Source: Macrostomum lignano (taxonomy: Eukaryota). Taken from it: a DNA stretch of 64,000 nucleotides. The position numbers and the translations under genes were made by a program. Positions within the stretch are counted from its first letter, which is position 1; each line of letters starts with the position of its first letter. Positions 76-37,175 of this stretch are shown here, piece by piece. Under the pieces are notes generated by a model. That model was not told where the DNA came from and ran no database searches. It saw only the letters and a list, made by a program, of their open reading frames with translations. The stretch spans positions 1,712 through 65,711 of the forward strand of contig NIVC01000097.1 in assembly GCA_002269645.1 (NCBI GenBank), given 5' to 3'.

Positions 76-641
76 CTGTTCCACAATCCACCGATTCCGA
101 TTGCGTGCACTGCGTTTCCCGTCAACTTCAAGGACTGCGACTTCCGACTTAATCGAAGCCAGTTCCGCGTCGCTCGATCCCGTTATTCTCTCAGCGCACT
201 GCCTGTCCTTTACCAGAGCTAAGAGTCTTGGAGTCGGAGCAGCCCTGGCCTTGTTGAGCACGGACTCTCGAGCCAGCTTGACGCCCTTCGAGATTACGGC
301 TCGTTCGGAACTCATCGTCAGCCTGTCGACCGCGGAGTTAAAGTCCGACAGAGACGTCACGTCGTCGAAGTTGGCGAGAACCTGCGCAGTCTGCGACATG
401 CCGATCAGAGCCAGTCGAGTTTTTGTGGGACCGATTGGAAATTTAGAGACCAAGGCCTTCACCTCTGAGAGCAGCCTGTCGAACTGTGTTTGAGAGCATG
501 AAGACGATGTGTCCACTGCGACCACCAAGTCCAGGTTGATGCAGGGGCTTGTCGAGCAGCTGAGCTCAATCTGATGCACCAGTATTAGAGAGCAATGACA
601 GACAGAACCTTCCAGCATCTTGGATAAGTGTTGGAGAGCAT
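76..641 (-). pseudogene. vWA-domain secreted protein, paralog 1, exon 1 (signal peptide + vWA1); rest of gene lies left of the window; two net-compensating 1-bp frameshifts
   Basis: Reverse complement matches 17398-17966. ATG at 641, donor AG|GTGATT at 75. A 1-bp loss near 587 (gctctctaata vs gctctcctaata) gives a TAA, and a 1-bp gain lies near 135. ORF 46..690 carries DLVVAVDTSSS in the correct frame between the two lesions. Confidence 0.8.
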
Positions 642-957
642 TTCGATTTGTGAGCCGATTATTCAAGTGTAAGCTACGCTTTTCTTTCACAGCTAAAACT
701 CTATGAAGTATCGCTTAAGCTGGTCCCTTTGACTTTCGTACTTATATTGAAGCTTTGCTTCGTTTGTCTTTGGCAAAAGCTCCTTTCTGTGTTACTGAAA
801 TGCGTCTCACTGTAACTGTACACGGGGATTCTGAGCAAGTAAAATATTTACTGCCATAGACAACAAAAGTTGTGACTTTCCCTTTGCAATTCTGAGTGTT
901 TTAGTTTTAAATTGACAGTGCGAAGTTGGCTCTAGAGTAAACCAACTTTCATTTCAT

Positions 958-2499
958 CGTGAGTGGCAAGAAAAAAATAAGTAATTGAATAAACTACATC
1001 GAGCCTGTCCTCTTTTACAGTCACTTTTTAAACTTTATTATGAAACATGTTGCTTAAAGCTAAAATTATCAACCCTGAAATACAGCTGTCTAGCCAAAGA
1101 TATCAAATCTCTTGTACGAACTTTGGCTAAAAGCATCAGGGCAATCTTTCATGAGCCCCATAATTTCAGAAATCCATCCGTGATACTTCAAACCTCAGCA
1201 ATTCCCTTATGAGTCACTGCATTTCAGCAATTTTTATTATGAACCATGAGGAGTACGAGATCTGCTAGCAAAATATCTGCTAGCCGAACATAATTTACTT
1301 TGCTCTCTTATCTTTGCTTTTTGATAGAGTACGCTCGTAGTAACAAAGAGTCCTAGCTTAGAGATTATACTGTTTATGCACGAGTCTGCCACAGACCCCG
1401 AGAAACTGAAATGTTGAGGCTCATGTAGGATTTTCTGGAAGGTCAAGGTGCATGAGGGATTGCTGAGATGTGGCTCAACGAGGGGAGGGGGTTGTAAAGA
1501 CGCTAAGGGTAAATTGGAAGTTGTTTGTTGGACAAGCCAAAGGTAAGTCAAAGGAGGGACAGTTAAGGTTAAGCCATGGCTCTTATGGAGGCTTTGATGC
1601 CCAAACTCCACAAGGGTGCTGGTAAACAACCAGTGGTTTTTGCAAAATTAAAATTTTGGCGACAATGAAACAATAAGTAGATGGTATATCACAGATAGGA
1701 TTTTGCGTAGTGCCTGCATCTTTTGCTCACATCGGATAGCAAAGAATTGAACTCGAAGCACGTTGTTTCTGGGCCCAGGCTGCTGCGGTTTTACAGCACA
1801 TCCGTAGCAATGGCCATGCCTTTGGGCACCGCAATTTTCTCTCACAGTATTCTGTTGTGGGGAGACGACTCTTGACCTTTGGGCCGAAACACTGCTTCGC
1901 TATTGATATGGATCGCCTCTCAGGGCAGGAAAATTGATCTGCATGCCGGTCGCCGAGATAGTGATGTAATTTGAGCATCATACGTAAATTACCTTTAATT
2001 GTCCTCAATTATTAATTGTTGTTTCTTCTATTTTTGGCTGTTTTTCAAAGTGCTTTTTGTTTGTAGAGTTTATTATTGGAAACAGGTCAAAACAGCTAGA
2101 CGCATTTCCAAAACCAGTTTGGCTCAGGGGAGGGTCGACAACTTTGCAATGTACCCCGGCTTTGCGCGACCAGCCAATCAGGATTGGCCTGGACCCCTGA
2201 CACGCGGCAAACCAGCTCTACCCAGCCTGAGAGCGCGCCGCAGGTTCAGTGCAATCCGGATTATCGAGCGGCCAGCCAGACAATCCAAATTTTGTTAATA
2301 TAAATAATTTTGTTAATAATTTTTAATAATAATTATTAATTAATAATAACAATAATGATAATAAATTATTTAAAATAATAAAAAAATTGTTAATAGGTAA
2401 TATTATTTTGTTAATAAAGTTAACAAAAGTGACGGTACAAGAGGAAAGGCTCGATGTAGTTTATTCAATTTTTTATTTCTTTTTTGCTGCCAACTCACT
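958..2499. mobile_element. Candidate non-autonomous DNA transposon bounded by ~85-bp imperfect inverted repeats
   Basis: 958-1040 (gtgagtggcaag...aattgaataaactacatcgagcctgtcctcttttacagtcacttt) is the inverted copy of 2412-2499. No TSD identified. Confidence 0.45.
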
Positions 2500-2721
2500 G
2501 TAGCATGCGCAGGCAGCCAGTTCGGGCACATAGTTTGCACTCCGCTTCCCCTTGCTCGAGCACATCCCAACTCAATGAACCGGAGATCTGAGTTCTGCCA
2601 GACAGTAAATATACAGACACAGCCACCTTCTATTTCTCCACCTTTTTGAGGGGCTAAATAAAATAACACTCGCAATAACCAGCTAGATTTGCTCGCTAAA
2701 TTTGTGGCAAGAAAGAACCCA

Positions 2722-35319: not shown

Positions 35320-35887
35320 CTGTTCCACAACCCGCCGATTCCAACTGCGTGCACTGCGCTTTCCATCGACCGCGCGGCTGCGACTTCCGACTCAATCGAA
35401 GCCAGTTCCGCGTCGCTCGATCCCGTTATTCTCTCAGCGCACTGCCCGTCCTTTACTAGAGCTAAGAGTCTTGGAGTCGGAGCAGCCCTGGCCTTGTTGA
35501 GCACGGACTCCCGAGCCAGCTTGATGCCCTTCGAGATTTCGGCTCGTTCGGAACTCATCGTCAGCCTGTCGACCGCGGAGTTGAAGTCCGACAGAGACGT
35601 CACGTCGTCGAAGTTGGCGAGAACCTGCGCAGTCTGCGAATGCCGATCAGAGCCAGTCGAGTTTTTGTGGGACCGATTGGAAATTTAGAGACCAAGGCCT
35701 TCACCTCTGAGAGCAGCCTGTCGAACTGTGTTTGAGAGCATGAAGACGATGTGTCCACTGCGACCACCAAGTCGAGCTGAGTAATGCAGGGGCTTGTCGA
35801 GCAGCTGAGCTCAATCTGATGCATGAGAAGCAAGGCAGTGCTGACGGACAGAGCTTTCAAAAAGCATTTGCCACAGTTTGTGAGCAT
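35320..35887 (-). CDS. vWA paralog 3, exon 1 (signal peptide + vWA1), 1-bp deletion near 35640
   Basis: ATG at 35887; mature part nearly identical to paralog 2; gcgaatgccg vs gcgacatgccg; length 568 vs 569 nt; donor AG|GTGAGA. Confidence 0.82.
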
Positions 35888-36224
35888 TTTTTAAAATGAA
35901 TCGGTAAGTTCTGGTTAAATATTAAGTAAGTACCTGAATCAAAATAACTAGAATTGACTGCGGCAAATAGTACTAAATCTCAAGACGAAACTAGCTCGAT
36001 TCTGCTTGAATTCAAAAGCCTGTATCACGAGAAGGCTGTCTATGGCAACTTTTTCTATTGTGAGTACTTTTTGAAACTTTTGAGGAAAGCTTTGCGGAAG
36101 CAAGCATCGACCTGCTAAATTTATGTGTCATAAAAACCATACATGCACTTTTGGCTTAACTAAACATTAAGCCAGTGTGATGCTTACCGGTGCTGGGCCA
36201 CTCGCCTTGCAGCTGAAGTTAAAG

Positions 36225-36494
36225 TCTATCTATCTATCTATCTATCTATCTATCTATCTATCTATCTATCTATCTATCTATCTATCTATCTATCTATCTA
36301 TCTATCTATCTATCTATCTATCTATCTATCTATCTATCTATCTATCTATCTATCTATCTATCTATCTATCTATCTATCTATCTATCTATCTATCTATCTA
36401 TCTATCTATCTATCTATCTATCTATCTATCTATCTATCTATCTATCTATCTATCTATCTATCTATCTATCTTTCTATCTATCTCTCTATCTATC
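36225..36494 (+). repeat. (TCTA)n microsatellite
   Basis: About 67 units. Confidence 0.97.
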
Positions 36495-37175
36495 TGCCGA
36501 AGACGAACGAAGCAAAGGCTTCAATATAAGTACGTAAATGAAAAAGACCAGCTGAAGCAATACACCTTTTACCCTCGATTTTAAACTAGGAGAACTTCGA
36601 AACTGACAAACTCCTCTTCAATATTGGCACTCTATGGTCGGGCACTCAAAATATACAATCAATATTGACAGATCAGACTTTAATTTTGACAAACTCCGGC
36701 TCAATTTTTGACAATGCACGTTTAGTCAACTTCTCTTGGGAGAATTCGGTAACAAAGTAATACAATGAAAGCCTAAACGGTGCTGAAGTTATCTGTGCGA
36801 AATCGGCTTATTGTGACCTTGCTTTTGGGATCTAAAAGTATTGATTAAATTTCTTATTCTCCATCCTTTTACACACACTTACAAATAGCCTGACCGGTTG
36901 GGCCGCAAAGTTCGATTCTATTTTGACAGAGTTGCTTCAAAACTGACACTATGGTCTGTGTACCCCAAAAGTCCAAAATCAATATGATGTCACGCAGTGT
37001 CGAATATCAGTGTCGAATATCCAAAAAGACGGTGTCACGCTGTATGCGATAGGAGTCAGAAGCACGGAAGGCTTGGATGAGTGAGTCGTTTTACTTTTGT
37101 CGAAGAAAAAATTGGCACCCACGACTGCAGGTTTTGGGTGACGTTTGACGTTTGGAAATTTGTAAAAATCAATTT
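36495..37175 (+). pseudogene. Internally deleted relic of a fourth vWA paralog
   Basis: 36495-36575 matches the upstream region 17263-17340. 37013-37080 encodes SNIQKDGVTLYAIGVRSTEGLD followed by a phase-2 GTGAGT donor. 37110-37175 matches intron sequence 21706-21770. Confidence 0.75.

Follow-up and report, generated by a model that had tools for sequence, protein, structure and literature searches.

The window analysed here is a stretch of 64,000 nucleotides from Macrostomum lignano. It makes up the final 64 kb of contig NIVC01000097.1 of the DV1 assembly, and the end of the contig lies 1.7 kb past the left edge of the window. This contig (65,711 nt, assembly GCA_002269645.1) codes for Mlig003734g2, and it matched window positions 19601-45558 at 100% identity. 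It contains a cluster of genes for predicted secreted proteins that carry two vWA domains. Self-comparison and tblastn revealed four pieces of one gene family in the order (-) (+) (-) (+), i.e., in head-to-head, tail-to-tail and head-to-head pairs, and the alternating orientation described in a first-pass annotation of this DNA was thereby borne out. The same annotation had counted four gene members. The four pieces do exist, but paralog 1 is represented within the window by one exon and relic 4 by about 95 nt. The three genes of the cluster, Mlig004332, Mlig014655, and Mlig003734, have been deposited in GenBank as "hypothetical protein". The GenBank gene models for M. lignano were built from an RNA-seq-guided transcriptome (PMC5730564), which argues against the idea that the locus is without transcripts.

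Another contig from this assembly, NIVC01001851.1 (referred to as the twin), was collinear with window positions 1-34428 and about 99.9% identical to it. Outside exons and tandem repeats, the twins differed by 29 substitutions and 51 indel columns over 23.6 kb, a substitution divergence of about 0.12%. The twin carries intact versions of all three genes, encoding proteins of 672-678 aa. It may be noted that DV1 was assembled from PacBio data and that the assembly contains a great deal of redundancy (PMC5730564). A further protein, P0004 (671 aa, NIVC01000075.1), is a third copy of paralog 1, and the cluster region is therefore present at least three times in the assembly. On two other contigs (L002, 26471-34558; L006, 21749-29845), the complete paralog 1 gene precedes a gene of 141-143 aa, after which comes one of about 1,240 aa. 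The latter is a Tudor-domain gene on the L002 contig, and no Pfam match was recorded for it on L006.

Table 1. Members of the dual-vWA gene cluster and the repeats lying in their introns (window coordinates).
Feature	Position	Strand	Remarks
Paralog 1, exon 1 only (signal peptide and vWA1)	76..641	-	Mlig004332-type; remainder past the left edge
Paralog 1, 5' flank / 5' untranslated region	642..844	-	about 94% identity to the 5' flank of paralog 2 (17194-17397)
Paralog 2	17398..23229	+	Mlig014655-type; twin encodes 678 aa
Paralog 2, exons	17398-17966, 18275-18528, 19852-19960 (truncated), 21137-21617, 22101-22378, 22577-22726, 23087-23229	+	
Paralog 2, (AGTC)n microsatellite filling intron 3	19961..21116	+	1.16 kb
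Paralog 2, 29-bp minisatellite in intron 6	22765..23029	+	within the 97.7% tract common to paralog 3
Paralog 3	29620..35887	-	Mlig003734g2; GenBank product 568 aa
Paralog 3, exons	35887-35320, 34932-34679, 34024-33878, 31630-31123, 30980-30706, 30352-30230, 29761-29620	-	
Paralog 3, (AGTC)n microsatellite filling intron 3	31651..33851	-	2.2 kb
Paralog 3, 29-bp minisatellite in intron 6	29819..30205	-	
Relic 4	36986..37080 (~95 nt)	+	3' end of vWA2 exon (..SVSNIQKDGVTLYAIGVRSTEGLD), then GTGAGT donor

The annotated intact proteins (678, 672, and 672 aa) and the DNA agreed on a structure of seven GT-AG exons with intron phases 2,1,1,2,1,1, the exon 7 acceptor of paralog 2 lying at 23087 (CCAG/AATGCG, the slash marking the exon boundary). 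The count of seven exons with consistent phases proposed earlier was thus confirmed. The possibility that a further mini-exon separates exons 3 and 4 was considered and ruled out, the 18 missing codons being the 3' end of exon 3, which is deleted in the window copy. Intron 3 of all paralog types was found to be almost pure (AGTC)n over 1.1-2.2 kb (also on L001, ~12642-13740, and on L002, from ~19250 onward). The repeat begins about 26 nt past the donor and stops about 20 nt short of the acceptor, and its position is conserved despite an exon dS (synonymous divergence) of 0.4-1.3 between paralogs. Each (AGTC)n unit provides a donor-like GTCAGT and an acceptor-like CAG. Both this microsatellite and the minisatellite of intron 6 were present in three of three paralog types.

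Relic 4 matched the end of exon 4 of paralog 2 at 23 of 24 nt, against a chance expectation of 0, and has kept a phase-2 GT donor, the same phase as in the gene family; its best alignment was with the paralog 1 type. No further exons of the fourth copy were detectable near the relic by tblastn. An exon-5-like resemblance (W-A-K-K-F-S...L-C) at 36884-36976, upstream of the relic, had an E-value of 30 and stood in the wrong order, and was put down to chance.

The encoded proteins consist of a signal peptide, vWA1, a cysteine-rich linker, vWA2, and a cysteine-rich C-terminal region of about 140 aa. Their calculated mass is about 71 kDa, with an isoelectric point of 8.3-8.9 and 27-28 cysteines, eight of them in the C-terminal module. 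Two stretches matched the Pfam VWA family (PF00092; whole-protein E = 1.3e-46, 159 bits against a cut-off of 23.8), and vWA1 begins about 10 residues past the signal peptide. In paralogs 1 and 2, Kyte-Doolittle 19-residue windows exceeded 1.6 at residues 9-30 only, and the C-terminus was polar; the N-terminal hydrophobic segment of paralog 3 was weaker (1.2). Such a hydropathy profile, with an N-terminal signal-peptide-like segment and no transmembrane or glycosylphosphatidylinositol-type segment, is that expected of a secreted protein, in agreement with the first-pass annotation. By alignment, vWA2 of paralogs 1 and 2 has DKSGS, GT.T, and ITDG, which together make up a complete metal-ion-dependent adhesion site (MIDAS) motif, DxSxS...T...D, and this domain may bind metal. 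The possibility that the segments following vWA1 and vWA2 are internal duplicates was also considered; hhalign gave a probability of 0.2%, and only the last vWA helix aligned.

When the spliced paralog 2 protein was used as a query, the matches were almost exclusively M. lignano proteins: BOX15_Mlig014655g1 (96% over 100% of the query), Mlig004332g1/g2 (65%), and Mlig003734g1/g2 (64%). The other matches covered generic vWA only, at 24-27% identity. When 1.84 billion representative proteins were searched exhaustively with a hidden Markov model (HMM), vWA matches numbered in the thousands, and the best 150 of them were examined. Among these, the full architecture was found only in the cluster's own proteins and in three relatives, P0035, P0049, and P0117, all of them also significant for Pfam VWA. 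P0035 comes from another M. lignano locus (Mlig013408/Mlig006715). P0049 is an intron-free contig of 1,033 nt from SRA run SRR30276812, a spliced homologous transcript from another sample, and P0117 comes from a JGI metagenome contig. A local search of the multi-vWA matches with the C-terminal profile found no cysteine-rich tail, and a search with P0049 as query returned only P0049 itself. As far as the databases reach, the family is apparently restricted to Macrostomum or its flatworm lineage, as the first-pass annotation had suggested.

To compare the three paralog types, synonymous (dS) and non-synonymous (dN) divergence was calculated codon-wise for each exon. The mature part of exon 1 gave a dS of 0.05-0.08 (dN/dS 0.22-0.64) and exon 7 a dS of 0.04-0.11 (dN/dS 0-0.38). 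In exons 2-5, dS was 0.42-1.3 (dN/dS 0.21-0.61), with amino acid identities of 40-67%. Divergence was pronounced in vWA2, where the paralogs had 40-49% amino acid identity, a dS of 0.8-1.3, a dN of 0.45-0.56, and a dN/dS of 0.36-0.61. dN/dS was below 1 in every exon. The low dS of exons 1 and 7 against the high dS of exons 2-5 points to gene conversion at both gene ends, superimposed on old duplications. The paralog that is closest switches from exon to exon, and the homogenised parts are the most GC-rich ones (0.56-0.62 vs 0.43-0.51).

Gene conversion is recognised by a local dip in synonymous and non-coding divergence, and such a dip was seen in the per-exon dS values as well as in a 3' tract of high identity (22765-23234 vs 30083-29615; 97.7%), which takes in about 320 nt of non-coding intron 6 with its minisatellite. 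Extreme purifying selection at the protein level might instead be the reason why exons 1 and 7 are nearly identical. The vWA1 domain and the C-terminal module are indeed almost invariant as proteins, and the exon 1 tract stops at the exon boundary. However, the synonymous sites are also near-identical, the 3' tract extends through the intron, and paralogs 1 and 2 have in addition 200 nt of 5' flank in common at 94%, so that we regard selection as a very improbable explanation. Exon 1 of paralog 1 differed from its twin at 8 of 566 nt, 12 times the background of 0.12%. Two of these substitutions (in the D-D-V-T residues) were checked, and in both the window state was that of paralogs 2 and 3. 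Judged from such comparisons, gene conversion at both gene ends appears recurrent and is probably ongoing.

A redundant assembly, with a 99.9% identical twin contig for the region, raises the question of whether the paralogs are mis-assembled haplotypes of one gene. We give this idea almost no credence. The copies within the window differ by the dS and amino acid identities given above for exons 2-5, and vWA2 is even more diverged. Their signal peptides and 5' regions also differ, paralog 3 having a promoter region and a signal peptide unlike those of paralogs 1 and 2. Moreover, the alternating order is fixed on both twin contigs, and the redundancy affects the whole cluster rather than single members. 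Judged from the layout, inverted duplication is a plausible origin of the cluster, and the duplications are old. Relic 4 supports gene loss, as expected for the birth-and-death family envisaged in the first-pass annotation, but in its pure form this description is incomplete, since exons 1 and 7 and intron 6 have been homogenised by conversion.

When the window copies were compared with the twin, each of them was found to be damaged. There are five lesions in all, of which four are frameshifts of 1 bp and the fifth is a deletion of 79 nt; the first-pass annotation does not mention them. Two of the frameshifts are indels in exon 1 of paralog 1 (near 588 and 131), an exon that is intact in the twin. 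In paralog 2, the 79-nt deletion at 19960/19961 removes the last 53 nt of exon 3 together with the donor, at the cost of 18 codons that include two conserved cysteines; the coding sequence is otherwise 100% identical to that of the intact twin. As a result of the deletion, the first GT of the microsatellite abuts the truncated exon 3. Splicing from this GT reproduces exactly the 328-aa product annotated on NIVC01000097.1, and a cryptic donor 8 nt farther downstream would preserve the frame. In paralog 3, exon 1 (~35640) and exon 7 (~29687) each lack a single base, which explains the truncated 568-aa GenBank model.

The frameshifts and the exon 3 deletion of the window copy either arose in the assembly or mark a redundant copy that began to decay very recently. 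We put the chance at about even that they are errors of long-read assembly, in which case the window cluster would be no less functional than its twin on NIVC01001851.1. The background between the twins is dominated by indels, as is typical of an uncorrected PacBio consensus; 47 of the 69 single-base indels adjoin an identical base. The 79-nt deletion falls exactly at the border of the microsatellite, and the untouched remainder of the paralog 2 coding sequence, together with the nature of the assembly, points the same way. On the other hand, all five lesions lie on the window contig and none on the twin, for which the random expectation is about 1 in 32, and the exon 1 deletion of paralog 3 lies outside any homopolymer. 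The GenBank annotation, too, took the sequence at face value, as its 568-aa and 328-aa products show.

That same one-sidedness, with all three copies damaged on one contig and all three intact on the other, would be expected if the window cluster were a redundant copy really decaying into pseudogenes after a recent chromosome or genome duplication in M. lignano. The DV1 line has extra large chromosomes, and the assembly has 180 Mb of duplicated blocks that are at least 95% identical (PMC5730564); furthermore, the microsatellite GT yields precisely the annotated truncated product of paralog 2. Decay is possible, though we incline away from it. A substitution divergence of about 0.12% leaves a very short time for five disabling lesions, the coding sequences of paralogs 2 and 3 show no excess of substitutions (0 and 3, respectively), and the indel-rich background suggests sequencing error. 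Since the twin differences are mostly single-base indels, largely beside an identical base, assembly error is at least as likely as real decay.

Taken together, we favour, with a probability of roughly 0.6, the view that the window holds a Macrostomum-restricted cluster for secreted, cysteine-rich dual-vWA proteins, formed by old duplications, homogenised at the gene ends by conversion, and giving products of the extracellular matrix or adhesive type. Three full genes would have arisen through these duplications in alternating orientation, and a fourth copy would have decayed to the scrap of relic 4. Recurrent conversion would keep exon 1 (the mature vWA1) as well as exon 7 and intron 6 near-identical across the paralogs, whereas the middle of the gene, vWA2 above all, would have diverged under moderate purifying selection. 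The variable vWA2 would then bind a ligand through its putative metal site, and the invariant ends would have a part in folding, in disulfide-linked assembly or in the binding of a common partner. The redundant DV1 assembly contains the cluster in at least two near-identical versions, and the window holds one of them.

Several observations weigh against this view. As assembled, none of the three window copies encodes a full protein. The metal site is not uniform: vWA2 of paralog 3 has DQSST (DxSxT), vWA1 keeps DTSSS and the beta-4 Asp but the Thr of the MIDAS loop is not evident, and the vWA2 metal site of the distant paralog P0035 is degenerate. The linker, the segment after vWA2, and the tail had no Pfam match even at E<=10, and the tail profile had no match in the PDB. 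An AlphaFold2 model built from a six-sequence family alignment had a mean predicted local distance difference test (pLDDT) score of 41.5, with values below 30 in the C-terminal third, and is unusable because of these low scores. Finally, no expression, localisation or binding data for these genes were found in the M. lignano literature that was searched.

From the domain content and the weak similarity to collagen VI and PTMP1, we infer a possible matrix or adhesion role; the individual roles put forward in the first-pass annotation (adhesion, mucus, seminal, recognition) are guesses. A reproductive role (seminal fluid, egg shell or cement), or one in self/non-self or pathogen recognition with the variable vWA2 as an evolving interface, appears rather unlikely but is a real alternative, with several points in its favour. 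The family is lineage-restricted and multi-copy with turnover of copies, vWA2 has the highest non-synonymous divergence, and reproduction-related genes evolve fast in Macrostomum (PMC7336406). However, dN/dS stays below 1 in all exons, and the gene IDs were absent from the M. lignano full texts and supplements on reproduction, ageing, adhesion, and ploidy that were searched. No relevant paper on vWA in Macrostomum was found. More speculative, and in our opinion quite improbable, is a scheme of constant ends and a variable centre, in which conversion would fix vWA1 and the C-terminal module while vWA2, with its putative metal site, diversifies, giving this hermaphroditic flatworm a small repertoire of secreted binders for mate or sperm-egg interaction or for self/non-self or pathogen recognition. 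Under that scheme, the microsatellite of intron 3, lying at the exon 3 donor, would by its nature cause exons to be lost and copies to die.

In the surroundings of the cluster, a degenerate retrotransposon remnant was observed between paralogs 1 and 2 (2400-4700), with weak matches of its open reading frames (ORFs) to zinc-knuckle and aspartyl-protease sequences (E ~1e-3). Paralogs 2 and 3, which lie tail to tail, are separated by a 6.4-kb spacer with a single trace of symmetry, an inverted match of about 105 nt at 84% (24112-24216 vs 27374-27479). Intergenic short-period arrays occur at 23697-24104, 36225-36495, 37386-37889, and 38124-38337; they comprise a 9-mer x45 between paralogs 2 and 3 and, past paralog 3, (TCTA)n, a 21-mer x24, and a 16-mer x13. 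The 9-mer array gives rise to ORFs on both strands that are long but spurious. About 6 kb past relic 4 a cadherin gene (2,255-aa GenBank product) starts on the plus strand and runs from ~42843 to beyond 45558. In the right part of the window, tandem arrays predominate (50219-50913, 53102-55101, 55967-59008, 59592-60398, and 62087-62567), the types being (GTCT)n, 2 kb of (ATCT)n, a 3-kb 29/87-bp satellite with a strong C-over-G skew, an 18-mer x45 at 99% identity, and a 21-mer array. No Rfam or tRNA matches were obtained within the window. Two UniProt models that stem from the older ML2 assembly, P0002 and P0008, look chimeric, with exons of the vWA family fused to unrelated or antisense ORFs of the neighbourhood.

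M. lignano serves as a model organism in work on regeneration, bioadhesion, and sexual selection. The family described here is abundant, multi-copy, taxon-restricted, and uncharacterised, and its secreted vWA proteins are therefore candidate components of the matrix, of adhesives or of the reproductive system. The cluster is real and fairly ordinary, its genes had previously been annotated as hypothetical proteins, and its interest is modest. What the present analysis adds is the mosaic pattern of conversion, the microsatellite-filled intron 3, and the lesions of the window copies. The locus is a clean small case of mosaic evolution, with the ends converted and the middle diverged, and it also illustrates the practical difficulty of calling pseudogenes in the redundant DV1 assembly.

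We compared the family with known vWA-containing systems. No full-length match to a characterised protein was found. The first-pass annotation had described the architecture as a signal peptide, two vWA domains, and cysteine-rich parts that include a "vWC-like" module. The other parts are present, but the vWC-like designation was without statistical support, and the label is unverified because nothing except vWA matched Pfam or the PDB. The tail segment C-x-DP-x-x-G-x-x-[HY]-x-EGE-x-W-x3-C-x4-C has a putative likeness to the N-terminal half of a VWC/Fn1-like sub-domain. One relative gave a faint match to Fn1_2 (E = 0.1), and VWC (PF00093) was matched neither by the full protein (E<=1), nor by the relatives or the isolated tail (E<=10). 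Besides, a VWC domain has ten cysteines, and the family module eight.

Cochlin and vitrin are also secreted proteins with two vWA domains. Their N-terminal LCCL domain had no Pfam counterpart in the family, which is set apart further by its extra cysteine-rich C-terminal module. Matrilins share the layout of a secreted protein in which vWA, spacer, and vWA are followed by a C-terminal assembly module. The spacer of the M. lignano proteins, however, is not EGF (none at E<=1 for the full protein), and their linker and tail are without Pfam matches at the threshold given above; the matrilin coiled coil is likewise unmatched, the tail being cysteine-rich with no helix predicted in the low-confidence model. 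The top matches of the exhaustive search were long multi-vWA proteins, some of them named collagen alpha-6(VI)-like or alpha-1(XII), and the family-specific C-terminal module is absent from them. Collagen VI and FACIT collagens differ from the flatworm family in that the latter has only two vWA domains and neither a Pfam collagen match nor a visible Gly-X-Y run. Hence the statement that the architecture is not that of matrilin, collagen VI, vitrin or cochlin held up.

By family profile, the closest solved structures were the N-domains of collagen VI alpha3 (9han_C, 1.6e-23), the best match in the PDB, and, in second place, proximal thread matrix protein 1 (PTMP1) of the mussel byssus (4cn8, 8.2e-22). 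PTMP1 is a collagen-binding matrix protein. With 454 aa, it has neither the cysteine-rich linker nor the cysteine-rich C-terminal region of about 140 aa, and compared with it the M. lignano family has about 330 additional cysteine-rich residues. The likeness is limited to generic vWA cores, and orthology between a mollusc protein and the flatworm family is not implied. PTMP1 is likewise a secreted protein with two vWA domains, and both of its vWA stretches match the family profile.

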